Shown here: positions 18,709 through 37,837 of the stretch, one piece after another
Numbering within the stretch: position 1 is the stretch's first letter
Layout: each line of letters starts with the position of its first letter
Assembly: GCA_024704765.1 (NCBI GenBank)
Contig: JAKMXF010000330.1
Location: 62,001-126,000, forward strand
DNA length: 64,000 bases
Source: Oopsacas minuta
Lineage: Eukaryota > Animalia > Porifera
Direction: 5' to 3'
The notes under the pieces: generated by a model
Database searches by the model: none
Told to the model about the DNA's origin: nothing
The model's input: only the letters and a program-made list of their open reading frames with translations
Position numbers and translations under genes: made by a program

Positions 18709-19803
18709 CTAGATCATAGAAGGTTTCTTGAACTTACCCTGTATCCAAACTCTGAACATCTTGATTTGCTTCCCTCTGTTAACTTGTAACCTCTTGTCTG
18801 AAATCAGCTGTACCCTTTCCAACCCAGCTTCTTGTTCGAACAACTGACTCACCTCCTGCTCTGTAAAGAAGTATGCTTGAGTGCCATCTCCACGTCTGTA
18901 ACAGTTTGGTTGTAAACAAGTTCCTAGCTTGAATCTCAGTTGAGTCATATCATATCTCCCATAGTCTCTGAAAAGCAGCATACCTCCTGGCTGCAACAGT
19001 CTAGATAGTCTCTTCGTAACAAGACACGCTTTTGAGGGAGGAACAGCTGATAATACAAATAGCAGGAGGATGAAATGGAAGGAATTAGGCGGAAATGGAA
19101 ACTTAACATTATCAGAAGAGAGATCACAGACAAATGGATGAATACGTTTAGAGTTATATTGTGGGTTAGCTTTGATCAAGTCAATGGCAGATTCTGCAAA
19201 ATCACAAGCATATATAAATAAGTCAGGAGACGGGTTAGATTCTAGAATTGGAAAAGAAGAATTTCCAACTCCACAACCTGCATCTAGAATACGAACTGTA
19301 GCTGTACTAGCCTCAGAGCACAAATGTAATGACAAATAAGTGTCAATGTCAATTGATAAGACAGGAGAGGTTAACTCTACTGTAGAATTAACTTGCTCTT
19401 GTGCATCTATCTTAGACTGGGGATGGATGGGGCCATGAGATGGGGGTGTGGTAGCTAACTCAGGGAAAGAACTCAATAACCAATTCCTATCCTTAAAGAA
19501 GTTTTCGTGATGTTGTTGATAGAATGCATGCCATGATTTAGAAGAGTTAGCATACTGCTGATCTACCTCATGACTAGGTAGAAAGCTAGAAGAATTGAGT
19601 GCTATCTTTTTCTCAGCCTCTTCAATCTGAGCCTCGCTCCACTCTACATCATCCCAAGCATTGTGTTCATATACTCGCCCGGGATTATCTAGAAATCTCG
19701 TACCGAACTCTGCCTTCTTCTCTAATACCTCTCCACAATTGTCAGTGTCTGATGGATTGCAAGGTTTAGGTGGAACGCTAACAAAATTCAAGTTCTCTGC
19801 CAT
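18709..19803 (-). CDS. METTL2: tRNA N3-methylcytidine methyltransferase (METTL2 clade)
   Basis: FGTRFL....VYEHNAWDDVEW, FFKDRNWL..FPEL, SAM motif ILDAGCGVGN, LLFRDYGRYDMTQLRFK, RVWIQGKF. Confidence 0.92.
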   Translation of the reverse strand: MAENLNFVSVPPKPCNPSDTDNCGEVLEKKAEFGTRFLDNPGRVYEHNAWDDVEWSEAQIEEAEKKIALNSSSFLPSHEVDQQYANSSKSWHAFYQQHHENFFKDRNWLLSSFPELATTPPSHGPIHPQSKIDAQEQVNSTVELTSPVLSIDIDTYLSLHLCSEASTATVRILDAGCGVGNSSFPILESNPSPDLFIYACDFAESAIDLIKANPQYNSKRIHPFVCDLSSDNVKFPFPPNSFHFILLLFVLSAVPPSKACLVTKRLSRLLQPGGMLLFRDYGRYDMTQLRFKLGTCLQPNCYRRGDGTQAYFFTEQEVSQLFEQEAGLERVQLISDKRLQVNRGKQIKMFRVWIQGKFKKPSMI

Positions 19804-20512
19804 CTATCATCCCTTTACTTACTCGTCATTACAGTATGTATGTCACGGATTATTGGATAAAATAAATTTATGTGATATGTAATCGGATGGTTATAAATTA
19901 TAATATTAGTATTATCACGAGAAATATGAAGTAGATGCCGGATATAAGAACACCGATTATAAGAACCGGCATCCACTGACCACTGTATTATTATTATTAA
20001 TTAATACCTGATTGTTGTCTATATCAGTATGCTTTGTCCAGATTGAAAACTTTTTAATAAATTTATTAGGAATTCAATTTGATTGTTCTAGGTTCAGAAG
20101 AGAGAGTACAAATTAAATGACTTCGTAAGAAATCGTATATGTTTCCTCATTATATGGTATTAACATGGTCAAGATAAGATAACTTTGTCTAAGTACAATA
20201 ATTAATCAAACACATTGAATCTGGCATAACAGGAATAATCCCAAAGAATAATAAAATAGAGAATTTAATCTGAAGTCTAATATATTAATAATAATAATAA
20301 TAATAATAATAATTCACAAACGAACATACATCCTGAACAGAGCACTAATGACGTTATTATTATGCACACTATTTATTAGCCAAGTTTGAAAGTGCTGAGA
20401 GGAGAGAAGTGGTAAAATGAAGTTTGCTTGACCTTGAAAGTAAGATGTTAAAATAACCAGAGTAAGTGCTATGTACTCACATCACACTTACTATCTATAG
20501 CAAGTACATGCA

Positions 20513-23045
20513 TTACATAGTTGTGGACTCCTGTAAGGGAGCATATCTATTCTGTGGAGGCCCTGAGCTTTGTACCTGATAACCTGATATATCAAGAGGT
20601 TGTTTATTTTTCAGTCCAAAAGCAGGGTTTGTTGTTTCTTGAATAACAGATTTGTGGAATTCTTTGGGCGCTTCTACAAACTTAGAGGCAATAGCATCTC
20701 TTACCTCCTTGTCCCAATCCTTATACTCTCTGTATTCCAGGTAGTAGAATATTACTTTTATAATCACGAGTAGAATAATACCTATAACCAGGCCTACCAG
20801 AACTATACCTAATATAATGAACCAGAAAGGGAACACAGTATTACATATAGGCTCGGTATTAACGTAAATAGGTAGGAACTGACCGTTATCATCTCTAGCA
20901 ACATAGTAAAGAAAGTAGCAGTTAGGTACTTCACGTAAACAAACACCTGCAGTGTAGTTGTTAATAAAATCTACGTCATTAGCTGTTTTAACAGGAATAT
21001 GGTTATTAGCACACACAGATCTGCAATCAGATAAGTTAGATATAGTAGAGTTCACTGCACACTCAGCACAACCGACATTATCCAAACAATCAGATGCTTC
21101 GGTATAATATTGACAGAACTCTCCCAAATACCCTTCCTGACACAAACACTCTTCACAATTACAGGTACCTCTACCAGCGCAGACTAATCCATTTCCGCCT
21201 GGCTCTATACATTTCAGTTTAGATAGACTACACTCACACTCTGACCCACTGTACTCAGGTCTACACTGACACTGATTACAGGCACAAGTCCCTCTCTCCA
21301 TGCCACCACACAGCATGGAATTAACACGTCCACAGGAGGTATCACTACACTCACAATACCGTCCGTATATGTTGTTATCGTGTCTCTGATCGCACTCACA
21401 TCTACCACATACACATTGACCACGCTTAGAGCATACAGAATTGGACCCAGGCTTTATACAGGCGCTAACGTCTTGTGGTGCCTCCCCCGTACAGTCACAA
21501 ATATCTCCAAATCTCCCAGCATTGCACTCACATATTCCACACACAAAGGTTCCGTTACCATCTGAACAGTCTGGAGAGTTCTCCACTGCTTCTGCTTCAC
21601 ACGGACAAGAACATAACGCATCAACCTCCACCCCAACCTTACCATACAGGAGGACATTAATCTGACCTACAGCTGTTTGGGAGATACACTTCTCTAGAGT
21701 AACATCTATCCTGAACTGAGCCTGATCCCCTAGATTAATGCCTACACAATCCTCTCCATCAGGACTGACCTGATCACATTGAGCAGTAGATGTAATCCTA
21801 ACTCCAGGGACCTGTTGTAATTCTATGTTAACATTTTGACTGAGAGACATGTAAGCATCAGAAATTATGTCCAATACATTCTCAGCTCTATCCTCTAGCT
21901 TGGCTACCCACGATCTACCCAGCTCTCTGGAGAGTATGTTATACAGGTGGACCTGGTTAGCAGCGCCTCCTATAGCGAATATAACGAATATATTATTCTC
22001 CTGTAGTTTAGCTCCTAAGTGTCCAATTGAAGGGTAGTCCTGTTTGGTAGATTCGACATAGGTTGCAAACGTATCATCCCCCTCGTACTCCAGATGACAC
22101 CGTCCATCATTTGGCTCTATTATACCTGCTAGTTTTCCGTCATGAGCTATATGAAATGTACCATCTGTCACAACCAGGATAAGGTGACGACTATTAGGTC
22201 TCCAGCCTATTTCATTAGTACACACAGCCGATTGCATGATAGCATCAAACGTCCCTTCAGGATTGTCCTGGTTCCTACTGAACTCTTGACGGAATAGAGT
22301 GTCATTGAATAATGTAAAGTTCTGAGTGAGATTCAGTGAGTGATGGAACCCATAGGTAGGTAGACAGGTTTCTCTAGGACCGCACGGGTTCTCTATACGT
22401 CCGAAACTTCCATCTCTATAGACAGGTTACACAGCAAATACAAAACTATCAGTAAATGAAATTATAAATTAACTAAATTTACCTGAATGGAGCTATAGGC
22501 TTGTCAACAAAGCTTCCTATACCCAGCATGTAGTCACTAGTAATATTCCTAACAGTATCAACCAGTTCCTGAGACACACTCTGTATCTGCATGAACCCTA
22601 CCCTCATGCTGGTACTAAGATCCATCAGTAGGTACAGGTCGAGAGGGTACCCCGGAGCTGGGGAAGATGTTATGTTGAATGATTTCGTTTCTCCTAATCT
22701 CAACTCTAGTTTGACCCGCTGTGGCTGAGTGAGTATAATCTGGTTTCCTCTTGAAGAACCGAGAGGGTAGTTTTCCAGTATAGTTAGAGAGGAGGAAAGG
22801 TGCTGTAGATATGAAGTATTGGAGGAATATTCAATACAGGTATCTTCATCTAGATGAGGGATACAGCGTGTAGAGTTGAAGGATGGGTGAGTACACCAAC
22901 CACAATAGTGAGCTACATTTAAACACTTAGAACAACTTGACTCTCTGGAACAAGTGTTACGCTGTATATCTATCGACTGAAGATAGGTTGTGTGGAGAGA
23001 GGAGAGTAGCAATAATAATATGAGACTTCTGAACCCTTTTGACAT
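20513..23045 (-). CDS. ITGB: Integrin beta subunit, 2 exons, about 821 aa
   Basis: Exons 23045-22483 and 22415-20513 joined by a 67-bp GT-AG phase-2 intron (..KPIAPFR/DGSFG..). Signal peptide, PSI (CSKC..YCGWC), beta-I (DLYLLMDLSTSM, NQDNPEGTFDAIMQ, QDYPSIG), four I-EGF repeats, beta-tail domain, TM helix and cytoplasmic tail. Confidence 0.95.
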
Positions 23046-23360
23046 TATTTGACTACCTTATTACCTCTAATTCAATAATTTAGAATACAATAAACGAATA
23101 ATGACAGCTAATTATATTCTTATATAATAATCGATCATTGAATAATGCACTGAAATAAGAGGCTATTGAGCTTCTACAGATTATCAGTATATATGGAGAC
23201 TTGGAATATGGATTATTCTTCAATGAACAATAAGTAGAACCACAATGACGAGGACATGATAAACAGTTTAAAGAGTTGGTGGATTGAATTGAGCCATAGA
23301 CAGACAATTACTTACTAAGCACTACTTTATATGTGCATTAATAAACCTGCATCTAGCCTA

Positions 23361-23481
23361 GGAAAATAGCTGGAATATTTCATAATAGAATCAGTGTTGG
23401 AGCAAATCTGCATATATTAGCGTAATAAATATTAATTGGAGCTGGTTGAACCACTAATCCAATTAAGGTTTTAAGTCTTCA
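23361..23481 (+). repeat. 121-bp direct repeat, copy 1 (copy 2 at 25059-25179)
   Basis: 5 mismatches in 121 bp by eye. Confidence 0.9.
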
Positions 23482-24566
23482 ACAAAGACCAGCAAAAAAT
23501 TGACAGAGTTCGTTGAAGTCAAGCAAGAATAAATGTGATTTCATCTATCGAGTGAAATGTTACTTATGTAGGAATAAGAGAATGAACATAGTTATAGCCA
23601 TGAATGGACACAGTTCTAGGGAGAATATTAATCTAAGAGAAAAGTTTACCTGAATTCATAAAGAGCCTGCCTACCTAAGGAAAATCAATAGTCAGGATTT
23701 TTGTGGCTGTAAGTGGAATAGCTAAACACATTTTTCATTATCGATCCAAAATATAATACTGTATTACATTATATTATATATTGGATAAGTGGTATATACT
23801 GTCGGGTACATAGAATTCAACATCCAAAATGGGAAATTACAACAATTTGCAAAATATATAAATCGAAATATCATCTAGTCATGTAAAAGGTGTGAAGATT
23901 ATTAAACTCCATAGTATTTAGAGCAAATATATACCAGAACGAGCTAGTATAGGACAAAAATTGGTCATTTTGCTAACGAAATCTAAATCACACATACAAA
24001 AAATGAGTAAAAATCACACAATATCGTAAAATACCATATATATAAAAGTTTAGCCAATACAGACCTAATCAGGTTCTTGTTTTTTCTCCAAAATGAAAAT
24101 TTGTTGTACAGTGTTATCACTGCATCTATATGTAGGGCATTACAGGAGCGTAGACTCGGGTTGTGGATTGGTAGGCCTTCCACATACTTTCCATTAGTCT
24201 CTATGGAGAGAGCAGAACCCAACCATTGCCTACCCCATGCATTAGTAGAGTCATATAATGCTGTGCTAGACCTTTATTAAATAATCATAATCGGTTAACC
24301 AGGACAAAACATTGACTCGTCAGCTGTCCCGATTAAGCGTCTTCCACTATATATATTACTCCTATAGGCTTCGCACTATATTCAGTTCGCTACATGTAAA
24401 TTCTCTTTATCATCAACAAGGTTTTGGTCCCTTAGAAGATTCACGATAAGAGACTGGGGAAGGGGAAGTTACGCCCCTCGATGTTGAGTTGATTAGGGGC
24501 GAGTTGTCTGGCAATCCGTATATTACTACATCAGTATAATTTATACAAATAATAGTTGGTAAATAT

Positions 24567-24727
24567 CAAGGTTGAAACCGATCGAACCGAATATCAGTAT
24601 TCATGAATAGTTGCTTAAACGAATATTGATAATATTTGGTTACATCAACCGAATACCGAATACTGATATTCGTTTCGTAACCAAATATTGAACTATTCGC
24701 CAAAAATATTATTCGGTTGCAACCTTG
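24567..24727 (+). mobile_element. hAT-type MITE, CAAGGTTG family, copy 2
   Basis: TIRs caaggttgaaaccga / tcggttgcaaccttg; perfect 8-bp TSD gtaaatat (24559-24566 and 24728-24735), which fits the Ac-type nTnnnnAn pattern. Confidence 0.85.
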
Positions 24728-24808
24728 GTAAATATGTATTCATATATATGATACGGTATCACCAGAACTTGAATAGTGCCGGTGTCAGCATCAGAGGTAA
24801 TCCTCATA

Positions 24809-25274
24809 CCCCTGAACATTATTCACTAGTGATGATGTTTTGGGAAACATCATTCCCAAGGAAACCCTGTCTCTGAGTGTTTCCCCTTGCACACTTAGCA
24901 ACACGTACGCGGGTCAAGGAAACTTACAGCCACCTGGCAAAGCCAAAATCCAACGATAATTCAATGAAAATCCACATAGGCTATCCAAATAGTGAGTTAG
25001 AATGCTCAATTCTCGGCTAAATGCTATTTATAGTTAGATAATCCAATCAAAATAGTGAGGAAAATAGCTGGAATATTTCATAATAGAATCAGTGTTGGAG
25101 CAAATCTGCATATATAAATGTAATAAATATTAATTGGAGCTGGTTGATCCACTAATCCAATTAAGGTTTCAAGTCTTCATGTTTAGGGAAACAGGACGTG
25201 TTGCTAAGTGTGTTTCTCTTAGCAACACGTCTTGTTTCCCTAATCATCATTCACTAGTGAATAATGTTTGGGGG
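24809..25274. mobile_element. Element bounded by approximately 42-bp inverted repeats, carrying copy 2 of the 121-bp repeat and a 25-bp-stem hairpin
   Basis: The left end cccctgaacattattcactagtgatgatgttttgggaaac is the approximate reverse complement of gtttccctaatcatcattcactagtgaataatgtttggggg. No TSD seen. Confidence 0.5.
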
Positions 25275-25515
25275 AACACGACTATATATCATGAGTCATA
25301 GCATTCTATGCATGAGTGAATTCACAACTGACCTAGCGTAGTAATGGGGGTGTTAAACGTTAACTTATCCAAGTTCTTGAAATAGATAAATGAAATATGA
25401 CATTTGGATGATATTACAAACCAGTGGTCATATGTATTTGTAGGTTACTATTTATTATCTCTATGTTATATTTATATATATTGTCTTTAAGAAATTGAGT
25501 AGAATACGATAAATA

Positions 25516-26065
25516 ATGGCTAGCATGCCAGGGAATAGAACTTTATTAAACAGATCAAAGAGAGTAGAAAGAAGATCGAAGACAGCTTCAAGAGGTTACA
25601 TGAAGCTCTACGAGTGAGAGAGAGAGTAACCTCCCCTCTCGTGTTGATGATATTGAGAAAGTGTGCAATGTCAAAACTCAGGAACTACAAGAATTAATAT
25701 AAGCTTTGGATAAAGCAAAATCGTTCATCAAAGATACGTTGAAATCGAATAAACTTACAGATACAAACCAAAGAATTCGTTCAATCATCGACAACAAGAT
25801 TGCAGAACTAACAGCTGAAACAGACAGTAGCATCATGTTTGAGTGGGACAATTTATTCGAGACTGACATAGAACAACTAAAGAGTATTAAGCTTAATAGT
25901 CAGACTAACATATCTCTCACTCGCACCTTCCCTCCTCAAGTGAAGCCTGTTGTACTTGACTACAAAGTTAAACAGCTACCTACTGCTTACAGCTGTAAGA
26001 AATCTTCTGACAAGAAAGCTCCAGGAGAACTGAACAATCCCAGTAATTGCTGTTTCAACCAATGA
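25516..26065 (+). pseudogene. Truncated pseudogene of a coiled-coil + NHL family gene
   Basis: ATG at 25516; peptides KQIKESRKKIEDSFKRLHEALRVRE / SRVDDIEK..QELI*ALDKAK..FEWDNLFETDIEQL..KAPGELNNP, with two frameshifts and a stop. It breaks off at what looks like the first NHL repeat (GELNNP). Family assignment is from memory. Confidence 0.65.
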
Positions 26066-26360
26066 TTACTACCAAGTTGACAGAAGAACTGGAAGAGCTA
26101 CAAACAAATTTAGCATGTACAACAGTCTCCAACCTATATGTGAGAAAAGGTAACAAAATGTTATATCTAATACATTTAAATTAAGGTTGAGACTATTTCC
26201 ACCGACCGGTAAAAAGTTGTTACACTAATTCGAAAAAACATCCAATCCAACAGCTGTAATTCACTTCAAATTCCCAATTCCACAATCTGACGTAGCACAA
26301 ATCCGCAGAACCTCCCAGCACAAATGCGAGAAAACTAGCTCCAGTCAGTGTCAATAATAG

Positions 26361-26497
26361 CAGGGCCGTAGCCACCAAAATAAAAGTGGTCAGGTTAACC
26401 TAACCAACCTGACTGAGTGGTGCCATATTGGGGAAATTCAGTAACCAAAAGTGATCAGGTTGAAACCTGACTAACCTGACTAATAGCTACGGCCCTG
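26361..26497. mobile_element. MITE with 12-bp perfect TIR cagggccgtagc
   Basis: cagggccgtagc ... gctacggccctg; internal ggtcaggt/acctgac motifs; flanks aatag / catag. Confidence 0.75.
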
Positions 26498-27089
26498 CAT
26501 AGCCACTTCGTTTAATTAATGGTACACTAATACATTTCAACATGAATTTAGCATGTAAGTAGAATATAATATAGTATATAGATCTAGGTAGCTTTCGAAG
26601 TGTTCGTGGGTCGCGCAGCGAAAGCAAGCGAAGTATGCTAGTTTTCGTTATACTTTTGTAACTTTGGTAGAGACTAATTCTGCTACACTTTTCATCATTT
26701 TTGTTATGTAACAATTATAACCGTAGGGATACGTATAGGCTATAAATAGATACTCATAGAAGAGTACTTAAATTCAAGACCCTCCCTCAGTTGTCATTAA
26801 ATAATTATCACTACTAAAAAGTGAGATCTATCCCGGTAATGAAGAATTAAAGAGAATATAACAGTATCATTGACAGTGCAAAGTGTAATTAAAGATAGCA
26901 CTTAAAATTATCAAGATAAAAATTCTTCTGCGGATAGGACTACAAAATACAGAATTAATTAGTGAAATTTGTAATCACATGGAAGGAGGAACCAAATTGA
27001 ATTGTTAATTAAGAACATAATCTCAGATTCCCTTTATCATTAATAATACCTCGTCTGAATTAATGCAGTTAATGACAACTTCAGCTACA

Positions 27090-30000
27090 CTAGAGATGTG
27101 TAAGACTGCTGATACTCAAATCTCTATTGCTGCTGTCGTGGTTGAGAGAATTATCTAATCTGGAGAAGAGGTTAGAGGGTGAGTTGTCGTGTTGTGAGTA
27201 CTCACTGGATTTAGAATAATCACTTGATTTTGAGTGAGATTTCTTGTAGCTGCGGAGGTTTGGATGAGATCTAGAGTTGTCAATAGATAGAGGCATCCTC
27301 TGAATGGGACTGAGATTCTCATTGCTTTGAGACTTATTATTAGAAGGATTAGAAGTATGAAATTGGTTGCCAGAGATAACAGAAATATTATCAATTTTGT
27401 GATATTTGTTGTTAGCTTCAGGAGGTATGTAGATAGGAGAGTGTGTAAACACAGGATAGTTATTAAAGCGAGATGGACTAGTCATGGAACGTGGTTGCAA
27501 ATGTATCTCGTTCATTTGTGTTTCTTCAGGAATTGAAGGTTTCCTAACGTATGAAAAGAAGCTCAATCCCCCAGTATAGTCAGTATAGCCTGGTTTGTTA
27601 CGGTTAGTTGGACGAGTAAATATAACATTCCTCTTGTCATGAGGAGAGCTGTCATTCGGAGTGTACTCATGTTTTCCCAGATCCCCGCCCTGCCATACGA
27701 AGCTAATCTCAGAGTCTGATACTGACAAATTGCTTGGACATCTAAAATAAAATAGAATTTTTGTGATAGAATGAATCAGTCATAGCATTTATAAATGTCA
27801 TAAAAAGCAAATTAGAAGTACCAGTCGGGTACTGTAAATTTGATCCTAACTCTGCTTGTTATTTTAATAGGCTATACATGAGTTATACTAATCATTTTCT
27901 AACCTAGTACTACGTATCAAATCCTCAGTATAATGCCTGGCATAATGGGCTACTAGTGGAGTCCTGTGGTCTGTGTCTGTTGAGTAGGAGGACTCTAGTT
28001 CACGAGATAGCTTCATTAGCTGTGGGTCTCCTATCATGAATTCCTCTGTATCTGTTTGGTATAGAGATGTGTAGGAGGAGTATATACTCTGACATACTGA
28101 CGTAGCTTCTGTCTCGTCGTCAGCAATATCTAAAAAGTATAATTAAAATACATAGGACGATAGTCAAATACGAATCTATATTATTAAATCTCAAATATTG
28201 TCCGTAAAGCCTGTTTCAAGGAAATGATTTATAGCATGCTATCAGAATTAGATTCCATAGAGGTAACAATTTGGGTAATCCGAATTTTGCGAATATACCC
28301 CTGTCATATGTAAATGTAGAATTGTTGATATAATTAAATATACTACTATAAATTATCTACTTACTGCCGGAAGAATGGGTCGTCAATTTGTATATTTTAG
28401 ATACGTAGTAAAGCGACGAGCCAAAGGCTTGTATACATAAATAAATATGACTACACTCAATGCATTGGGTATGAATATCCAACATTGAAGTATTATTGCG
28501 TGAAATACATGCTACCTGGGTGCATAGTTAATATTAGCCAACTCTAAATAATCAAGGAAGAATTACAAAATAAACAGCTGTTTCAGGGATATAGTTTACA
28601 CAATAAAGTATCTAATACTAGAAGCTATAATAATTTGACATGTGAATCACAGAATAAGTAATAGTCAGATTCAGGAAAAATAATAACAATATAAGCAATT
28701 TCAAATCGTATGTCAGATTTGATAAAAACGTGTGAACAGAATATTTAATTAGGACAATACAGCAATTGTATCAAAGTTTATTATTAAGAGCTAGCGAGGA
28801 ATTAATATAATATCTGCTAATAGCCGACTTCACAATATCTTATCGATGCTAAATACCTAACATTAAACTTTGTAGTATCATTCCACTGTTAGATGGATTC
28901 GTATAACTTCTCTGTAAACACAGTATAATGTACAAATTGGTAGTTTTAAGGTTGAAACCGCTCGACCAAGAAAATCAGTACACAGTACTCATGAGTAGCT
29001 ACTTTTCCGAATATACAATACTGATAATATTCGGTTCATTGGTTGCAACATTGCTTGGTAGTTTTAGATTTTAAACTATTCTGTTCAAATTAGAATACTT
29101 ACCTGTGCAATTACTGAGTTTAGGAAATCTCATTCTTAGTGGTAGGTTCTTGTTAGACTGTGTGGAGTACAGCTGACAGGTGGAGTCTGTAGAGGGTTGA
29201 TAGTATGGAGGATAACAGTTGGAATCCTCATAGGATAATTGTCGTTTAAGCAGACGAGGGTTTTGATAATAAGGTTTAAGTATGTCAATGCTGTCTTCCA
29301 AATAAGATTTTGATACTGTACCAATTCTGTTGTAAGTTGGATTCTATAAATATTCAATTATTATAAATTAGAGAGCAGAACAACAAATATAGGGAGAGGG
29401 CTGGCCGTTCAGCAACTCAGAGTTGTAGTCAATTAAAACGACTTATGTAACATATACATATACTGCTTAGTAGGTTAGAAGAGTAGAGTCAATGAATTGC
29501 AACTAATAGCACCCAAGAGGATACTGTTAGTTGGAAATTCGTTTATGCTTCACTGATCGCAAATAAGATCACTGCCACAAGAACATAATTATGCTATGTC
29601 ATTATCTTAATTATATTCAGCTGCACCATACAAGACAAGCTAATAAACAATAATATGGTCTCAACGACACTGTGCTTCGTCTAGCACGTTCTTATATCAA
29701 TTAGACTCTATTCATAAAAATACTATACGAATCAACTAAATAATTTTATAGTGACATGACAATATGATCAAATAATGATAAGGCCCTGTTAAATAAAAAT
29801 TGTTCCAGCTCCACATAATGTCCATGTAAGCATGAGGTGGTGGTGTTTCATTTAATTGGGATGAATTTGAAAGGAACGAATTAAAGGAGTAGTATTAATT
29901 AATTAATGAAAATTTAAATGTTTCTGAAAAGTACAACAATCAGAACCAAAGGTACAACAATCAACTTGTTAACCTTGGTTAATTAGTAGCAGATCCATGC

Positions 30001-31609
30001 CACTATAGAGGTCATTCTAGATATGTAAATTAATGGTTAGGTCAGTATACTAATAAGTTAATTTAAGGACTAAAGCTTGAAAATATGATCATTAGAAAGA
30101 TGCAATCATTCCATTAAAACAGATAATCAAAATATATGAACTTGAATAAGTTCAAATATCTTCATCAAAGAAAATTCAATGAAAGCTGAAAGTTGCCATT
30201 CTAATGTATTATACATTCATGTATTCATTTAAAAAACTATTAACCATTTAGTTTAGTGTTTAAACTAAATAACGTCATTTGTAATTAATTAATTAATTAA
30301 GTACAAACGATTCATTGCTAAACAATGTATTATGTGTAATAATCATCTAATATCCTGTGTGTTATGGGAAATCATTATTTCTAAGAAATTCTGTGACTTC
30401 AATAAAAATCAATTAACGAACGTCAAGCTTTACAAAAATCGTTTGTAAATAATATCAAACTAATTTTCTGTTTCCAGTAAATTCCACTCCTTTAAGGAAG
30501 CTAATATAGTGCTACGACACTAATTTACATATCCAGAAATCTGGAAAATGTGCATACTATCAAAAGTGTATCTATGTGGTTATAAGAACAAATGATATGC
30601 TCACCTGATCCACAAAATGTGTAAAATCAGAAGGATGTTTGTAATCTCTGTAAGGACTGATACTATCATCCATTTTTGAATCCATATGAGATTCTATCTC
30701 CATCCTAGCAGTTCTGACTGGTGTCCCTTTAGCTTTAGACTCCGAATACTTTGGTATTATCGTCTTAGAACTAGAGGATAATTTGTGTCTGCTCATCTCA
30801 GATGTTGATCCAGTTGTGCTAGGATCAGGAGTAGAGATTTCAATTGGGAGTGTACCGGTTACAAAACCGGGAGAAGAGTGATGTTGGTAACCGCCTAGTC
30901 TCTGAGAGACTATAGTGGAGCCAGAGGAAGACCTGAGAGAATTTTCTCTGTTGAAGTGAGATGAAGGCTCTGTTCTCCTCAGCTGTTCATGAGACAGGTG
31001 TGCAGGTCTGCCCAGGTTGGGTAGCGGGGAGGGACGAGCGGTAATAGAATTGACAGAGTGAGGTACTTCCATAGACCACTGTCTCTGATGACCTGACGTT
31101 ATATAAGGATTATCTCTCTTCACTTTCTGAGACTCTGAACCAATTCTATACCTACTCAGCTCTGGTTTCTGAGCAGACATGTCTATAGAGTTGATTGATT
31201 TAGGACTGGTAGAAGAGGTAGATCTTGAATAAGGACTTCTGTCGATTTGGGTATAGTTTGGAAAGGGTCGTTGTCGCTTGTCTGAATAATGAGAGCTTGT
31301 TGTAGAGAGATGTCTGTGGGGAACTGGCCCACCTGTGCCTGACTCCATTGCAGAAATAGACTGCAATCTGAAAGGACAACAATATAATCAGATCGAGAAC
31401 AAAATCTATTATCTAAATAATAAGATAAATGTATTTGGATAAATAACTTACTTTTGCAAGCTTTCTGTGGTATCAGATCGAGGTTTTCCATACTTTCCTA
31501 AATTAGTTTGCTTCTTCTTTTCTAGCTTCACACACAAGTTTACAAATAAAACCAAACTGGCGACAAAGAGTAGAGAAAATATTCCAAAAATCAAATTTTG
31601 TTCTTCCAT
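27090..31609 (-). CDS. Uncharacterised type III single-pass membrane protein with a Ser/Tyr-rich disordered cytoplasmic tail (adaptor-like), 5 exons, 679 aa
   Basis: Exons 31609-31452, 31367-30605, 29343-29103, 28129-27904 and 27741-27090; all introns GT-AG with matching phases (2,0,1,2); total 2040 nt open. N-terminus MEEQN-LIFGIFSLLFVASLVLFVNL-C-VKLEKKK. An in-frame TAA lies 9 nt upstream of the ATG. Confidence 0.75.
28411..28429 (+). mobile_element. Remnant of the Helitron 3' end
   Basis: aagcgacgagccaaaggct is identical to the terminal 19 nt of the 9299 element (18/19 to the 41688 copy); the terminal CTAG reads CTTG here. Confidence 0.5.
28948..29057 (+). mobile_element. hAT-type MITE, CAAGGTTG family, copy 3 (intronic)
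   Basis: aaggttgaaaccg ... ggttgcaacattgcttg flanked by gtagtttt on both sides. Confidence 0.65.
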
Positions 31610-33390
31610 TTGAACAAATTAAATAATTCAGACTTGTATTTAGTACAAATAGTTGAAGAGACAGAGAATCAATGTAGCAGTAGAACAAATGCTTTGGTAT
31701 GAATTACTTTACGTATTTTCCGGGCCTATTTAATATAGGATGTATTGTCTCTGGTAGTTATTATAATAAAAGAACCATTTCTAACTTATATACTCTTCAT
31801 ATTGTATGAGCATTCTCTGCTATTACGTTTCAATCCGAGAACATGTCAGCATTACTTAGTAACTAACAGATAAAATAAGATACAGGACATATTCGCCAAT
31901 AGCTATTCCCTTCATGAAGCCTCATTAACTAAATCGATGAGTTCTATAATATCAAAAGTGTAAATATATGACAATTTCTAATACTACTGAGCAGCTGAGA
32001 GAAAATCTGAATTGAAAGGGAATACAGTATTAAACATATTATGGGTGGGCGATGGCCACAGGAGTATATAACTGAGACAATTCATTCAAGACGTTCTCTG
32101 CACCTTGTCATGCCTCTGAGGAGGAACTGCCCTCTACAGTCCACAGAATGACTCTGTTACCAGCTTTTCATATGGCAGGGTGAACCAAAATGGAATACGG
32201 ACAATTGACTACATGGACACTTCACTACACGAGTACATATACGTATAAAATGGAACACATACAATTTGTGGGCATGAGTATAGAAGGAACATCTTTCTAC
32301 TTCACTTCAAGGGTGTATCTATTGGCTAATCTGTGCCTAAAGTATGTAGTTGTATAGTCTAGTCTAACTTTTCAAGTAGATAAGGTCGGGATGTGAATAT
32401 TATTATTTCGCCCTATTCCCCACTAATCATTTTTACGGAAAATTTCCTTTAACCTTTAACAGGAGCTTTTCGGGGTTATTCTATGATATACAATTTATGA
32501 CATTTTAGAAGGATGTAAAGATTTAAATCTATCAATGCGATAAATAAAAAATCACCAAAAAATTATTCGTTTTTTCTTAGAATGTTCGTATCGATGAAGT
32601 GAACGAAGGTGGGACCTAAATACAATTGCCTCACTTATAGAGGTTCTATCAGGGTAATTGCGTGATTAGAGTCAGATTATGAGATTTTCCAGAGCATAAA
32701 ATTACTAATATAATTATTACAGAGATTTATATGATAAATCATATTTTCACACATTCGGCCAGACTTCAGAATCAGCTAGAAATATCGTTTCAACGGCTAG
32801 CCAGGGCCAATCGGGTAATCGGGTAGGTAGATTCCTAAACTGATATTTTAAAGCTATATTTACTTAATTTATCATATGATTAACTATATTTCTACTCTTT
32901 TAGGCTAAAACTAAAAAATATTTTTAATCTTGTGACCTTGACTAATCAGGGTTTAATGGCTAGTAATATTTACCCGAGCTATACAAGAGACTGGACATTA
33001 CTTCATATAGCTAGCTACCATCAGGAATGTGAAGTTGCAGAATATTCGAATAAATTCTGCAAAATGGTAGTACGAGTACGCAATGAAATACAAATATACT
33101 ACGTATAAATACCGTAATAAAGGGAATAGAAATACCTAGCTAGCTAGAAAAGGAATTATAAATTTACATAATAACTTAATCAACTCGCCGCATCATTTCC
33201 ATATTAAATTGCGTAGTAAAACTATGTTTATTCATTAAATATCGTCACACCGTAAACTCTATAACTATGCATAAATCATGAAGATAGTCCATATTCTGTG
33301 CTGTATACTGCAACATAATATATAAGATACCCACATTTCTTCAAATTACATTGATGGACATTGTAATAGATATCTCAACAGCTTAGAGTA

Positions 33391-34248
33391 ATGGCTTACT
33401 TGTATTCAACATGTTTGCCAATTACACAAGTGCGAGCAGTCTCCTATTGTGCCCTAATCAGCATGCTATATATCCTCAGCATGTATATTGGTGTACCAAA
33501 TTTACCAAGAGACTTTCCAAGTGTTGTGCGTGCGAGAATACGTAATGTGATATTATACACACTACTGATTATATTCCTAATGAATTATGACTTATACGAG
33601 ACGAAGGCCAGCAGCTGTCCTACCTTCCTAGAGATGATTGGATTCAGCTCTTACCAAATAATTGCAGCAACTTTACAACCATTACTGCTCTCAATTATAC
33701 TCTTCCTCGGTCCTATAGTACAGTACACCATAGAGGGTAGAAATATTCTAAATCCTAGCTTTTGGATGGATAAAGATGTTATTCTAACTGTAAGAGCTCT
33801 TGTAATCGCCCCAATTACAGAAGAGATAGTATATCGTGGTTGTATGTTCCCATTGCTGTACTCAGCGTTTGGAACTACTGCTATTCTATTGTGTCCTCTC
33901 TTGTTCGGACTAGCACACCTCCACCATTTCTTTGAATGGTTCAAAGATGAAGACAATTTCCTCACATTCAAAATAGCAATGACTACACTTAAGAGGACCG
34001 TATTAGAGGTATGTATACACACGTGTATTACTTTTATTTTTGGAATATATTCAACTTTCCTCTTCTGGAGAACTTCAAACATAATATCACCAATTGTTTG
34101 TCACGTATTCTGCAATGGAATTGGTCCTCCGCCAATACATAGAATCAGCAGTACTAGAGGATCATCTTGTATAATCTATGCTTATATTATAGGGCTAGTT
34201 ATGTTTATTTTGTTGTTACTCCCACTCACGAATATGTACAACACCTAG
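33391..34248 (+). CDS. RCE1: CAAX prenyl protease 2
   Basis: Multi-pass; APITEEIVYRGCM, PLLFGLAHLHH, HVFCNGIG are the Rce1/Abi EExxxR, FxxxH and HxxxN motifs. Confidence 0.93.
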   Translation: MAYLYSTCLPITQVRAVSYCALISMLYILSMYIGVPNLPRDFPSVVRARIRNVILYTLLIIFLMNYDLYETKASSCPTFLEMIGFSSYQIIAATLQPLLLSIILFLGPIVQYTIEGRNILNPSFWMDKDVILTVRALVIAPITEEIVYRGCMFPLLYSAFGTTAILLCPLLFGLAHLHHFFEWFKDEDNFLTFKIAMTTLKRTVLEVCIHTCITFIFGIYSTFLFWRTSNIISPIVCHVFCNGIGPPPIHRISSTRGSSCIIYAYIIGLVMFILLLLPLTNMYNT

Positions 34249-34589
34249 TTACACCGAATGTATACTTATTACATGTCTACAGATGTATTGTAATGTATAG
34301 ACTATAGACCATATGTTAGATGTTGATAATTTGTAAAGGTTTCTCTAAATTCTTAAATTATTCATCAACAAATTTGCAACAATTATTAACATGTGTATTT
34401 CTGCAACTATTAAGTAAAGTTCCATATATGAGTTATTGATATATAGAAATGTCATCTTATCCGTAACTGTGAGCCATTTGTGGATTTAAGGAGTACTGCA
34501 ATTCTGAATTTTGGACAAATAAGGAATAGACATTAGTGTCCTTTCGCCTCAAAGCTTATTTAATCTTTTAATTTTGGTATATTTATCAT

Positions 34590-36102
34590 TTATGACTTTT
34601 TATGTTTGTGGTCAGATCTAGATCTGTGATGAGCATGAAGTTTATAAGAATCATATTCTCTCTGAGGTGAGTGGTGATCTCTCTTATACTGTCTGTTATC
34701 TCTACGGTAATCTGGGGAGTGTCTCCGTTTGGATTTATGAATCCGAGGTGGAGATCTCGGAGGAGATTTCTTATCCATTCTATTTCTCCTTTCTCTCTCG
34801 TCTCTCTCACTGACTGGATTTTTGTTCCTACTTCTAGTTTCCTTAGCCTTCTTCCTCATAGCTTGCTGTAACAATTCCATATTATCAAATACTAATCCGT
34901 ACTCTTGCTTGATTGCATTATTCTCTTCAAAGCTGTTGCCTCCCTTCCTCTGACTGCTAGCCTTATTAGCCAGGGACTGACAGAAATCTACGTGAATACG
35001 TCTGTCATCAATCAACACATTGTCCATCTTAAAATAAGCATTAGAACAGTCATCTATGTTATCAAACTCTACGAATCCATAACACAGAGAATCTCCAGTT
35101 TTCTGATCACGAATTATTTCGGTTGACACAACATTGCCAAATTTCGCGAAAATAACTGCTAAGTCTTCTGAGTTGGTACTAGGATGTAGCTTACAGATGA
35201 AGAGAACATTTTCCGGAGGAAGCTCATCAGAGTCGTGTATGTCTCCTATCACTTCTAAAAGCTTAAGATTAGTTTTAGTTGTTTTAGAGTTAATTCTCTC
35301 ATTTATTTCAACTTCGTTTAAACCGCGGAACTCATCAAGCTCCTCATCAGCTGCGATTGTGAATTCTCCTCTTCTTGTGAGACGGGGAGAAGGAGAACGT
35401 GAGGGGACATTGAAGGATGGAGGGTCTGGATAGGGGTCCTCTAGAATAATAGTGTGAGTTATTAGAATGTCCTGGAATGGTTTACCTTGTTCATCACAAT
35501 AAGCAGCACTCAATTTCTCTAGAACAGAGAATCCAGCAGCTGGAGAGAGAATATATAATATACATACAGTAGAACTCAGATAATACGCAATAAGTACAAA
35601 ATAGATGATCCATTTTTGAGGAAAGTACGACTTAAGCCAAGAATTCTTATCCGAGTTCTACTGTAATTAATATTAAAATGATTAAGTTAATTAACCTATT
35701 TATACCTTCAGCAACTTCTCCAAACACAGTGTGCTGACCATCCAGTGAGTCCAGGCTTGGAGCAAGAGTAAATAAGAACTGACTCCCATGCTGTCCTAAC
35801 CCGTTATTAACCATGGATATCAATCCTGCTTTAGTATGACGTATCTTGGGTACAATTTCCATATCAAAATACTCAGGATTGCCTCCATCCTCTAACAAGC
35901 CTGTTACACTACTGCCCCCTTCTCCAGTACCTGTAGGGTCTCCTGTTTGAGCTACGAAGTTCTCTTGAATGCAATGGAAGCGACAGAAATTGTAATATTT
36001 CAGTTTACAAAGCTTAAGAAAGTTATAACAACTATTTGCTCGCTCCTCAGGATACAAATCTACAATGATGTCACCAACTGTAGTTTCTATTATTACAGAC
36101 AT
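34590..36102 (-). CDS. PPIL4: Cyclophilin-RRM protein PPIL4, 2 exons, about 448 aa
   Basis: Exons 36102-35706 and 35539-34590 (phase-1 GT-AG intron, 166 bp). MSVIIETTVGDIIVDLY..NFLKLCKLKYYN; RRM PPENVLFICKL..SLCYGFVEF..MDNVLIDDRRIHVDF; R/S/H-rich tail. Confidence 0.94.
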
Positions 36103-36139
36103 ACTATATCTTAGAAATAAATATATAAAGATTCTGGGA

Positions 36140-36252
36140 TGTAGTAATCCGTCTAGCTCTCTGGAAAGTCCTGCGGTACAGATAACCTAGCTAGTTAACC
36201 GACCGTGACCTTTACCAGATGCTAGCGGACATCACTAAAGGAGAAATTTTAT
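36140..36252 (-). ncRNA. Candidate structured RNA: 96-nt imperfect hairpin (36142-36237) followed by ACA
   Basis: About 38 base pairs by manual folding, G.U pairs favour the minus strand, ACA at 36142-36140, ANANNA-like ATAAAA at 36252-36247. Identity unknown. Confidence 0.3.
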
Positions 36253-36481
36253 CCTATAGACCAATAGTATTACATGTATGACATACTAATAAACATGTAG
36301 ACCTTGTATTAACCGCCCTGACAGGCCCAACTATGCAGCTCATTCAGAAGGGCTGATCCTCCAATTAGCAACACCTAAGGTAATGGGAACAATTGGTCAG
36401 ATTATCCTCTGCTGTTCTCTATCACAGGTAGATTATAAATCTTAAAGTCATTAAATATAATCTTATCTCATTTTAATCCTA

Positions 36482-37837
36482 TCATAACACTTCTTCATCT
36501 GACTCTGTATCTGTTTGAATTAGTTTCTCAGGATTCTTAACCCCAACAGAAATGATTTCCTCTCCTCTCCTCTCTTCTTCTAGAGTTATCAGCGCTGCTA
36601 TTTCTAACTCAACAAGTTCTAATCCTATCTCTTCTTTCTGGAATGAGCACTCACTCAATTGTTTGTATACTTTACCAATCTTCTTGCTACTAACGCTTTG
36701 TATCCAAACACAGTAATCCTTAATATACAAGTCATTGTGTATGTAAAAGAGATCAGATAGAGCAAACAGCTGATAAGTATATAGCAAACATTTCAGAATA
36801 AGTGGTTTCCCTCCTTCAAATACACTACACATGTCATGTAACACCCTAATAGACAGCTGGAAGTTTCTATATATCGGATAACACAGAGATCTCCGTAGAC
36901 AGGATACCAGTGTGCTTCTAATAGAAGAGAAGGATTGTAGCCAAGATAGGGTAGAACTGAGCTTCCAAATGGTCCAAGCTGATTCTACATCCATCTCTCC
37001 AGCTGTACTTCTGTTAGCATAGCAATAAGCATACACTATATCTATCAATCCGTACAGGAGCTGGTACTCCATAGGAGACTCTATCAAGTATTGTTTCTTA
37101 GGTAACTGAGTAAGCAATAGCTTGTCTTTCTCATTTAGTTTAGCTATCTTCTCTATCTTATCCCAGGAAGGTGTGAAAGAGAATATATTCTCTAAATGAT
37201 GTATCTCCATTGTATCAGCTAGATAGTGCTCAGGATCAAATTCTAAGTTCTCAAAAGATTTTCTGAGTACTCCTCTCTGAGTGTGAGGAGTCCTGTCAGG
37301 GTCTGGGAGAGAGACAAGTTCAGGGAGGTCATCCTGTAGACGAGAGAACACCCCTTGCTTCTGATTAGCAAACCCATAACATGATCCACCTAAAGGAACA
37401 ATATCGATAGTCTCTGGTATAACTTGTTCTAACTTCCAATCTAACTCCTCATCAGAACTATCTCCAGTAGGAGAAAGCTTCTCTTCTTCTAACACTAATA
37501 TCTCTGGAGTACTTACAATACTTTTGATATCTGGCATCTTATTAGGTTGAGTGAGTAGCTTTGTTAGCATATCCAGATCAGGGAATACTTGTCCTGAATT
37601 CATTTTAGGAACATATACAACAAAGTTACCAGAATCTACGTCATAACAGGCTCTCTCTCTTCCATCTTCAGTAAGAGGATAGGGAAGGTGCAGACTGAGG
37701 AAGTACGGTTGGCAATAGAACTGGAATATGTTACCATCTATATGAGTCTCTACTGATGATACCTTTATATACGGAGCATATATACGGATTATTAGGAATT
37801 CTGTGTCTTGATCTATCTCAAATTTTGGGGTTAGCAT
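36482..37837 (-). CDS. SHQ1: H/ACA RNP assembly factor SHQ1
   Basis: CS domain MLTPKFEIDQD.EFLIIRIYAPY..F.FYCQPYFL.LHLP; YGFANQK.GVF; FDPEHYLAD; ESAWTIWKLSSTLSWL. Confidence 0.93.
   Translation of the reverse strand: MLTPKFEIDQDTEFLIIRIYAPYIKVSSVETHIDGNIFQFYCQPYFLSLHLPYPLTEDGRERACYDVDSGNFVVYVPKMNSGQVFPDLDMLTKLLTQPNKMPDIKSIVSTPEILVLEEEKLSPTGDSSDEELDWKLEQVIPETIDIVPLGGSCYGFANQKQGVFSRLQDDLPELVSLPDPDRTPHTQRGVLRKSFENLEFDPEHYLADTMEIHHLENIFSFTPSWDKIEKIAKLNEKDKLLLTQLPKKQYLIESPMEYQLLYGLIDIVYAYCYANRSTAGEMDVESAWTIWKLSSTLSWLQSFSSIRSTLVSCLRRSLCYPIYRNFQLSIRVLHDMCSVFEGGKPLILKCLLYTYQLFALSDLFYIHNDLYIKDYCVWIQSVSSKKIGKVYKQLSECSFQKEEIGLELVELEIAALITLEEERRGEEIISVGVKNPEKLIQTDTESDEEVL

Follow-up and report, generated by a model that had tools for sequence, protein, structure and literature searches.

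LOD99_8101, a conserved glass-sponge gene for a putative membrane-tethered, disordered scaffold with an adaptor-like layout

Transmembrane adaptors such as LAT and PAG are regarded as an innovation of vertebrates, and chiefly of their immune systems. The kinases and SH2 proteins with which they work are far older: Src and Csk are conserved as far down as sponges and choanoflagellates (PMC3492796), and phosphotyrosine signalling underwent an early expansion in holozoans (PMC4342544). A locus of Oopsacas minuta raises the question of whether glass sponges, which are syncytial and have neither lymphocytes nor nerves, encode a protein built to a similar plan, and what such a protein might do. The locus lies in a stretch of 64,000 nucleotides (assembly GCA_024704765.1, contig JAKMXF010000330.1, positions 62,001 to 126,000 of the forward strand), hereafter the window, in whose numbering coordinates are given unless another sequence is named. 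In a preliminary description made from these letters alone, fragments of open reading frames (ORFs) were joined into a hidden gene for a 679-residue protein, which was proposed to be a convergent or deeply diverged phosphotyrosine scaffold. The gene is LOD99_8101, annotated yet uncharacterised, and its product is moderately likely to be a membrane-tethered, intrinsically disordered docking scaffold that is restricted to glass sponges and adaptor-like in layout. The five exons are as follows.

31452..31609, minus strand: exon 1, with the ATG at 31609, encoding residues 1-52 plus 2 nucleotides (MEEQN stub, transmembrane helix, Cys26 and KLEKKK)
30605..31367, minus strand: exon 2, encoding residues 53-307, rich in Ser, Pro and Arg, with the invariant islands GSESQK, HEQLxRTEP and KGTPVR
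29103..29343, minus strand: exon 3, encoding residues 308-387, with KRQLS, YPPYY, TDSTCQL and LPLRMRFPKLS
27904..28129, minus strand: exon 4, encoding residues 388-463, the best-conserved exon (70-88% identity)
27090..27741, minus strand: exon 5, encoding residues 464-679 and the stop codon (27090-27092), with GYTDY, GGLSFFS, SIPEE, SPSRF, Y558xxF, Y567xxP and SHPNLR

Joined, these exons give 2040 nucleotides, or 679 codons and a stop, and are separated by four GT..AG introns of phases 2, 0, 1 and 2. All four junctions (27741|27904, 28129|29103, 29343|30605 and 31367|31452) were found exactly at the predicted sites in contigs of run X4, each bordered by CT..AC on the plus strand, and the splice of exon 1 to exon 2 is therefore among those seen. 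Depth in X4 runs to thousands on the exons, as against 17-80 in the introns, and Illumina adaptors occur at loose read ends. In three DNA runs from the same sample and study the locus is uninterrupted and none of the four splice joints is present; because the joints are absent there, the spliced form is RNA, and a processed pseudogene was ruled out. The model is letter for letter the protein entered at NCBI as 'hypothetical protein LOD99_8101 [Oopsacas minuta]' (P0013). The five-exon structure with its consistent phases was thus borne out by the frame, by the joints and by this identity. The gene is hidden relative to the list of ORFs alone, since public annotation already holds the exact model. 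No mention of the locus tag was found in the literature.

To identify relatives of the protein, searches were carried out with the model exon by exon, and the database proteins P0013 and P0007 were used for full-length searches and folds. P0007, from the EukProt transcriptome of Vazella pourtalesii, has 675 residues, is 71% identical and is colinear from MEEQN to SLTHL. Three ENA assemblies (L001, L002 and L003) hold an orthologue in a neighbourhood like that of the window, with the shared gene order SHQ1, PPIase/RRM, Rce1-like, LOD99_8101, integrin beta and methyltransferase. In each of them all five exons were found, with GT-AG introns at identical positions and phases, giving products of 680, 685 and 687 residues.

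Beyond glass sponges, nothing was recovered. With exon 2 as query, phmmer recovered only three orthologue fragments among 1.84 billion representatives, and a word-index search with exon 5 matched three proteins, all of them orthologue fragments, one of which comes from V. pourtalesii and led by cluster look-up to P0007. Queried with the whole of P0007 or with P0013 residues 325-540, the word index yielded P0013 alone. No non-hexactinellid homologue was found among 1.84 billion and 5.8 billion proteins, a scan of JGI metagenomes with an exon 4 profile gave no match, the core brought up no usable one in the ESM Atlas, and no paralogue appeared in any of these searches. As far as can be detected by sequence, the family is single-copy and restricted to glass sponges (at least five species); older orthologues may be undetectable, because disordered proteins diverge fast.

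One further contig, the Vazella-like ENA entry P0004 (7765 nucleotides), carries an exon 2 ORF that agrees with the Vazella protein as far as '...TGTLPIET', after which the frame is lost. The break is probably an indel error of assembly and no real frameshift.

Conservation statistics were computed exon by exon across the five species. Pairwise, synonymous sites are saturated (proportion of differences, pS, 0.63-0.78), the nonsynonymous proportion (pN) is 0.14-0.31, and the ratio of nonsynonymous to synonymous substitution rates (dN/dS) is at most 0.11-0.15. On these ratios the tail of the protein is under strong purifying selection despite its predicted disorder. The O. minuta protein is roughly 72, 58 and 50% identical to its counterparts in L001, L002 and L003, respectively. 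For exon 4 the corresponding values are 88, 70-71 and about 80%, for the conserved part of exon 3 they are 89, 68 and 55-58%, and exon 1 ranges over 63-83%. For the folded proteins encoded nearby, identity of O. minuta to the same three assemblies is 75-79, 69-76 and 62-74%, and it is higher (80-90%) for the PPIase domain. Residues 336-460, the core, are 76-91% identical, compared with 62-79% for SHQ1, Rce1, integrin beta and the methyltransferase, so that by alignment the core is conserved on par with the neighbouring integrin and enzyme genes.

The neighbourhood itself is also kept. A block of at least six genes (18709-37837) retains its order and orientation in four glass-sponge assemblies, at protein identities of 62-90%, and LOD99_8101 always lies directly upstream of the two-exon integrin beta gene on the same strand.

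Within the protein, 260 of the 679 residues are invariant in the five species, and they are grouped in 15 blocks of 5-20 residues between variable Ser-rich linkers. The islands are NLCVKLEKKK, GSESQK, KGTPVR, KRQLS, YPPYY, TDSTCQL, LPLRMRFPKLS, residues 404-423, RTPLVA, GYTDY, GGLSFFS, SIPEE, SPSRF, SHPNLR and SLTHL. Three of them are of particular concern here.

28023..28082, minus strand: the 20-residue invariant block, residues 404-423 (YSSYTSLYQTDTEEFMIGDP), with three invariant Tyr and SxYxxL
29200..29211, minus strand: PPxY, Pro352-Pro-Tyr-Tyr355, invariant in five species
27093..27107, minus strand: C-terminal SLTHL-COOH, invariant in five species within a poorly conserved stretch and fitting the class I PDZ-ligand pattern [ST]-x-hydrophobic-COOH

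PPxY and the C-terminal SLTHL are the two best-conserved classical ligands of the protein, and both were absent from the motifs listed in the preliminary description. For SLTHL it is from the fit to the pattern that we infer PDZ binding.

The layout of the protein was examined for what it implies about membrane insertion. Among the 679 residues are 117 Ser, 51 Pro, 49 Thr, 35 Tyr and 6 Cys. Residues 6-27 form the sole hydrophobic segment, with a 19-residue Kyte-Doolittle mean of 2.53 against a best value of 0.11 elsewhere, and two features define this end of the protein.

31529..31594, minus strand: hydrophobic helix, residues 6-27 (Kyte-Doolittle mean 2.53), predicted as a helix by AlphaFold2 and near-invariant in five species
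31511..31534, minus strand: Cys26-Val-Lys-Leu-Glu-Lys-Lys-Lys, part of the block NLCVKLEKKK that is invariant in five species; candidate S-acylation site and basic patch

The arrangement first read from the letters alone (a 5-residue stub, one helix, a juxtamembrane Cys with KLEKKK and a domain-free tail, with 35 Tyr in O. minuta) was upheld and is conserved in all five species, as is the pairing of helix and Cys, whose conservation in other sponges had been proposed as a check. Vertebrate immune transmembrane adaptors (LAT, PAG1/Cbp, NTAL and LIME) usually carry a palmitoylated CxxC. No juxtamembrane CxxC is present in any of the five species, Cys26 being single with no second Cys within 3 residues; S-acylation of Cys26 is probable. 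In L002 (6840-6870) the basic patch is expanded to KLEKKKKKKKQ, as compared with KLEKKKQ in the other four species.

By the positive-inside rule, the positively charged flank of a membrane helix stays cytosolic. In all five species the N-terminal flank is acidic (MEEQN and variants, with two Glu and no basic residue) and the C-terminal flank carries a charge of +4 within 15 residues. Because of this charge distribution and the 22-residue length of the hydrophobic run, the helix would act as a type III reverse signal-anchor, with the N terminus outside and the tail in the cytosol. A cleavable signal peptide, by comparison, has a positive n-region, a hydrophobic core of 7-15 residues and small residues at -3 and -1, whereas here an acidic n-region (MEEQN) and a 22-residue core are followed by the +4 flank. 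A cleaved signal peptide or N-in insertion, yielding a secreted or extracellular chain such as a phosphorylated matrix or silica-associated protein, is accordingly highly improbable. A Ser-rich composition with Lys and Arg, the restriction to glass sponges and the high exon depth in X4 would suit a product of that kind, but the hydrophobic run is too long for a signal-peptide core, the flanking charges place the tail in the cytosol, only two to three Cys are conserved, and PPxY and a PDZ-type C terminus are ligands of cytosolic proteins.

Structure prediction with AlphaFold2 on the five-species alignment gave a helix at residues 2-40 (predicted local distance difference test score, pLDDT, 94-98) as the sole confident part. 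A helix of lower confidence (pLDDT 50-60) was placed at residues 45-55 and a weak one at 423-432, and 573 of the 679 residues fall under pLDDT 50. When residues 325-545 were folded alone, the mean pLDDT was 37, and the ESM Atlas model of the sequence has a pLDDT of 0.30. A folded domain in the conserved core was rejected for now, as both AlphaFold2 runs, made from a shallow alignment, give pLDDT below 50 there. The tail of about 640-650 residues is predicted to be intrinsically disordered.

Profile searches agree with the absence of a recognisable domain that had been noted at the outset. Pfam-A hmmscan of P0013 and P0007 returned no family at E<=10, a per-exon scan was likewise empty, and a PDB profile search gave nothing significant (LIMK2 at E=0.11 being chance). 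The families absent at that threshold include PAG (PF15347), LAT (PF15234) and LIME1 (PF15332). This result bears on the idea of true orthology to vertebrate PAG1 or LAT after deep divergence, for which only the layout and a PDZ-type C terminus speak; without a profile match, with no homologue outside the hexactinellids among the billions of proteins searched and with CxxC absent, that idea is close to refuted.

The account that we favour, and consider moderately probable, is that of a membrane-tethered docking scaffold. Residues 6-27 would span the membrane once, N-out and C-in, and an acylated Cys26 together with the KLEKKK patch would pin the first part of the tail to the inner leaflet. From there, cytosolic partners may be recruited to the disordered tail by the 15 invariant islands, which would serve as short linear motifs. 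PPxY would be a ligand for WW domains of Nedd4 or YAP type and the C-terminal S-L-T-H-L a class I PDZ ligand, whereas KRQLS and RxNSxRSSS could be basophilic Ser sites with kinases as partners. SxY407xxL, Y558xxF and Y567xxP may be phosphorylated, or may be bound by clathrin adaptors or possibly by SH2 domains. Several points weigh against this account. The conserved core includes a stretch of 85 residues, which is long for a linear motif, and a small fold within residues 336-460 could escape AlphaFold, the alignment of five species being shallow. The tail offers a single PPxY and a single PDZ-type C terminus, short patterns in either case. In conservation, Tyr does not surpass Ser, Pro, Arg or Glu. 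The library type of X4 is not on record, and its RNA origin is deduced from the depth and the joints.

Whether the tail is a dedicated platform for phosphotyrosine was assessed by counting 17 motif classes (NPxY, PPxY, LPxY, YxN, YxxL/I, the immunoreceptor tyrosine-based inhibitory (ITIM), switch (ITSM) and activation (ITAM) motifs, YxxM, YxxP, YxxPhi, Src-SH2, Csk-SH2, PxxP, RxxS, [ST]P and di-Leu) and comparing the counts with 2000 composition-preserving shuffles. None of the 17 classes rose above shuffled expectation. Enrichment in SH2, PTB, SH3, ITAM or ITIM motifs was therefore rejected, all classes lying within the shuffle range. Retention across the five species differs among the individual motifs.

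SxYxxL (SSYTSL): kept in five of five species
Y567xxP: kept in five of five
Y558xx[F/Y]: kept in five of five
PPxY: kept in five of five; no LPxY in the protein
YxN: kept in four of five
NPxY: kept in three of five, with TPSH and SPSH in L002 and L003
NYTQI and KYHKI: not fully conserved

All the motifs first listed (NPTY, YYQNP, SSYTSL, IYSSY, NYTQI and KYHKI) are present where they had been placed; as to their conservation in orthologues, SSYTSL is kept throughout, and NPxY, YxN, NYTQI and KYHKI are kept to the extent given above. Of the 35 Tyr, 16 are invariant (46%), as compared with 37% of all tail residues, a difference with P=0.17 for five species and P=0.07 for three, and preferential conservation of Tyr was rejected. 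Phe replaces Tyr126, Tyr141 and Tyr527 in at least two of the four other species and Tyr366 and Tyr436 in L003 only, and several O. minuta Tyr exchange with His in orthologues.

These results bear on a special case of the scaffold reading, in which the protein is a dedicated phosphotyrosine adaptor and a convergent analogue of LAT, PAG1, NTAL and LIME. Src- or Syk-type kinases would then modify Y404/407/411, Y450/454, Y489, Y515/518, Y558 and Y567, and SH2 proteins would assemble on the products. The layout is consistent with this, matching that of PAG in its type III insertion, short stub, acylatable Cys beside a basic patch and Tyr-rich, domain-free tail (PMC2213442). Tyr makes up 5.2% of the disordered tail, three of the 16 invariant Tyr fall within eight residues at 404-411, and SxYxxL and YxxP are kept throughout. 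The conservation of Src and Csk in sponges (PMC3492796) also speaks for it. Against it stand the failure of any SH2 or PTB class to exceed the shuffles, the incomplete retention of NPxY and YxN, the five Tyr positions that swap with Phe and the several that swap with His, the lack of preference for Tyr, and the missing CxxC. The feature neighbours in the ESM Atlas (UL135, A36R, C1orf185 and the LIME1/PAG clusters) share the layout of an N-terminal anchor and a disordered tail and score 0.79-0.85, all below the lead threshold of 0.9, and shuffled proteins reach a first match of >=0.8 a third of the time; A36R and the LIME1/PAG clusters are thus leads only, in a range that shuffled proteins also reach. 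A dedicated phosphotyrosine adaptor is on these grounds unlikely, and phosphotyrosine docking as such is no more than possible. As for the scaffold first proposed, its layout and the invariant SxYxxL stood, and homology to LAT or PAG was not supported.

The same invariant motifs can be read without phosphorylation. In function the protein could resemble PMEPA1, Ndfip or Commissureless and serve as an adaptor for trafficking or for ubiquitin ligases. The WW domains of a Nedd4-family E3 ligase or of YAP would then bind its membrane-anchored PPxY, YxxPhi would direct endocytosis and the PDZ ligand would fix the protein at junctions, with Tyr serving as motif residues instead of phospho-acceptors. 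The invariance of PPxY, Y558xxF and the C-terminal T-x-L in five species suits such a role, as does an N-terminal anchor with a short stub. Known PPxY membrane adaptors, however, usually carry two or more PPxY, and here there is only one. The role would also leave some 640 residues under purifying selection and the 20-residue invariant block unexplained, and no Pfam similarity to the PMEPA1, Ndfip or Commissureless families was found, which together make it quite unlikely.

The region 5' of the ATG was also inspected. An in-frame TAA lies four codons 5' of the ATG, so that no N-terminal extension can be spliced onto exon 1, and the Vazella ORF begins at the equivalent Met. Together with a TATA-like box about 175 nucleotides before the ATG, these features ruled out an upstream coding exon; the signal peptide or ectodomain that such exons might have added, a contingency raised in the preliminary description, is not there. 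The upstream features, placed by comparison of the four genomes, are as follows.

31622..31820, minus strand: conserved non-coding stretch 5' of the ATG, with 73-77% blastn identity to L001-L003
31785-31792, minus strand: TATA-like box, from the alignment of four genomes
31718-31730, minus strand: invariant AATAGGCCCGGAA, from the same alignment

The counterparts of the stretch lie at 6540-6757 in L001, 6540-6758 in L002 and 9620-9836 in L003. These roughly 200 nucleotides are conserved across four genomes whose coding regions show saturation at synonymous positions, and the CCGGAA core of AATAGGCCCGGAA resembles an ETS site. The stretch 31622-31820 is probably the core promoter and 5' untranslated region, a reading under which exon 1 would be the first exon. 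One X4 contig of 2222 nucleotides (mean depth 233) starts in exon 1 (the 31487-31700 region) and extends further upstream; it may derive from an extended 5' leader, from a transcript that is unspliced or antisense, or from background DNA.

Intron 3 shows an irregularity of its own. In the three DNA runs, short words at 28172-28202 and 28411-28443 are 2-4 times as deep as the baseline, and contigs from these runs connect 28194 with 28411 across 9 other letters and lead from 28433 back to 28173. Such joins point to a dispersed repeat or to an insertion/deletion allele of about 216 bp; a repeat search revealed only a weak 16-nucleotide inverted pair.

LOD99_8101 is a tangible candidate for the means by which cytosolic signalling proteins come to the membrane in early animals, with Cys26, PPxY, Y404/407/411 and SLTHL as the residues of interest. 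The protein also illustrates cleanly that about 650 residues predicted to be disordered can stay under strong purifying selection between lineages whose synonymous sites are saturated. That glass sponges evolved a palmitoylated phosphotyrosine adaptor of their own, nucleating SH2, WW and PDZ complexes at the membrane, is unlikely on the present evidence; just as doubtful is its corollary that Src- or Syk-type kinases target the invariant Y404/Y407/Y411, Y567xxP and others. If true, the LAT/PAG design principle would have been invented a second time, independently of vertebrates, which would suggest that membrane-tethered disordered phosphotyrosine scaffolds are a recurrent solution where a rich phosphotyrosine toolkit exists. 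If the tyrosines are irrelevant, the protein would be an ordinary lineage-specific scaffold. In the literature no paper was found on non-vertebrate adaptors of the LAT/PAG type, and tyrosine, SH2 and PDZ go unmentioned in the O. minuta genome paper.

Among known systems, PAG1/Cbp is the closest in plan. PAG has a 16-residue ectodomain, a Cys directly after the helix, a basic patch and a long, Tyr-rich, domain-free tail with Ser/Thr kinase sites (PMC2213442). LOD99_8101 shares with it the predicted type III insertion, the short ectodomain (5 residues here), a Cys after the helix followed by a basic patch, and a domain-free tail bearing Tyr and candidate Ser/Thr kinase sites. The two proteins differ in that LOD99_8101 has no sequence similarity to PAG1, a single Cys in place of CSSC and a tail about 1.6 times longer. 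It also lacks Src or Csk SH2 sites of the YEEI/YSSV type and proline-rich SH3 ligands (one PxxP, below chance), carries PPxY and is found only in glass sponges. The C terminus of PAG1 has a PDZ-type T-x-L ending like the SLTHL of LOD99_8101.

In LAT, NTAL (LAT2) and LIME1, as in LOD99_8101, a few N-terminal residues precede a single helix, a Cys beside the membrane and a Tyr-bearing disordered tail, whereas LOD99_8101 lacks CxxC, has a tail three times longer and shows no homology to them. LAT depends for its function on several YxN sites for Grb2/Gads, as opposed to the single, incompletely retained YxN of LOD99_8101. Poxvirus A36R and UL135 of human cytomegalovirus likewise combine an N-terminal anchor with a disordered cytosolic tail of linear motifs (ESM Atlas scores 0.83-0.85), but the viral proteins are much shorter and have no alignable similarity or Pfam match. 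PMEPA1/TMEPAI, Ndfip and Commissureless share the membrane-anchored presentation of PPxY to cytosolic WW-domain proteins; they differ from LOD99_8101, with its one PPxY, in lacking any sequence relation to it and any counterpart to most of its conserved blocks. Judged by its sequence, LOD99_8101 is a transmembrane adaptor protein (TRAP) in layout and, because there is no profile match and CxxC is absent, not a member of the PAG, LAT or LIME1 family. What is new is an undescribed, lineage-restricted family with a distinct set of motifs, within a type of architecture that is already known.

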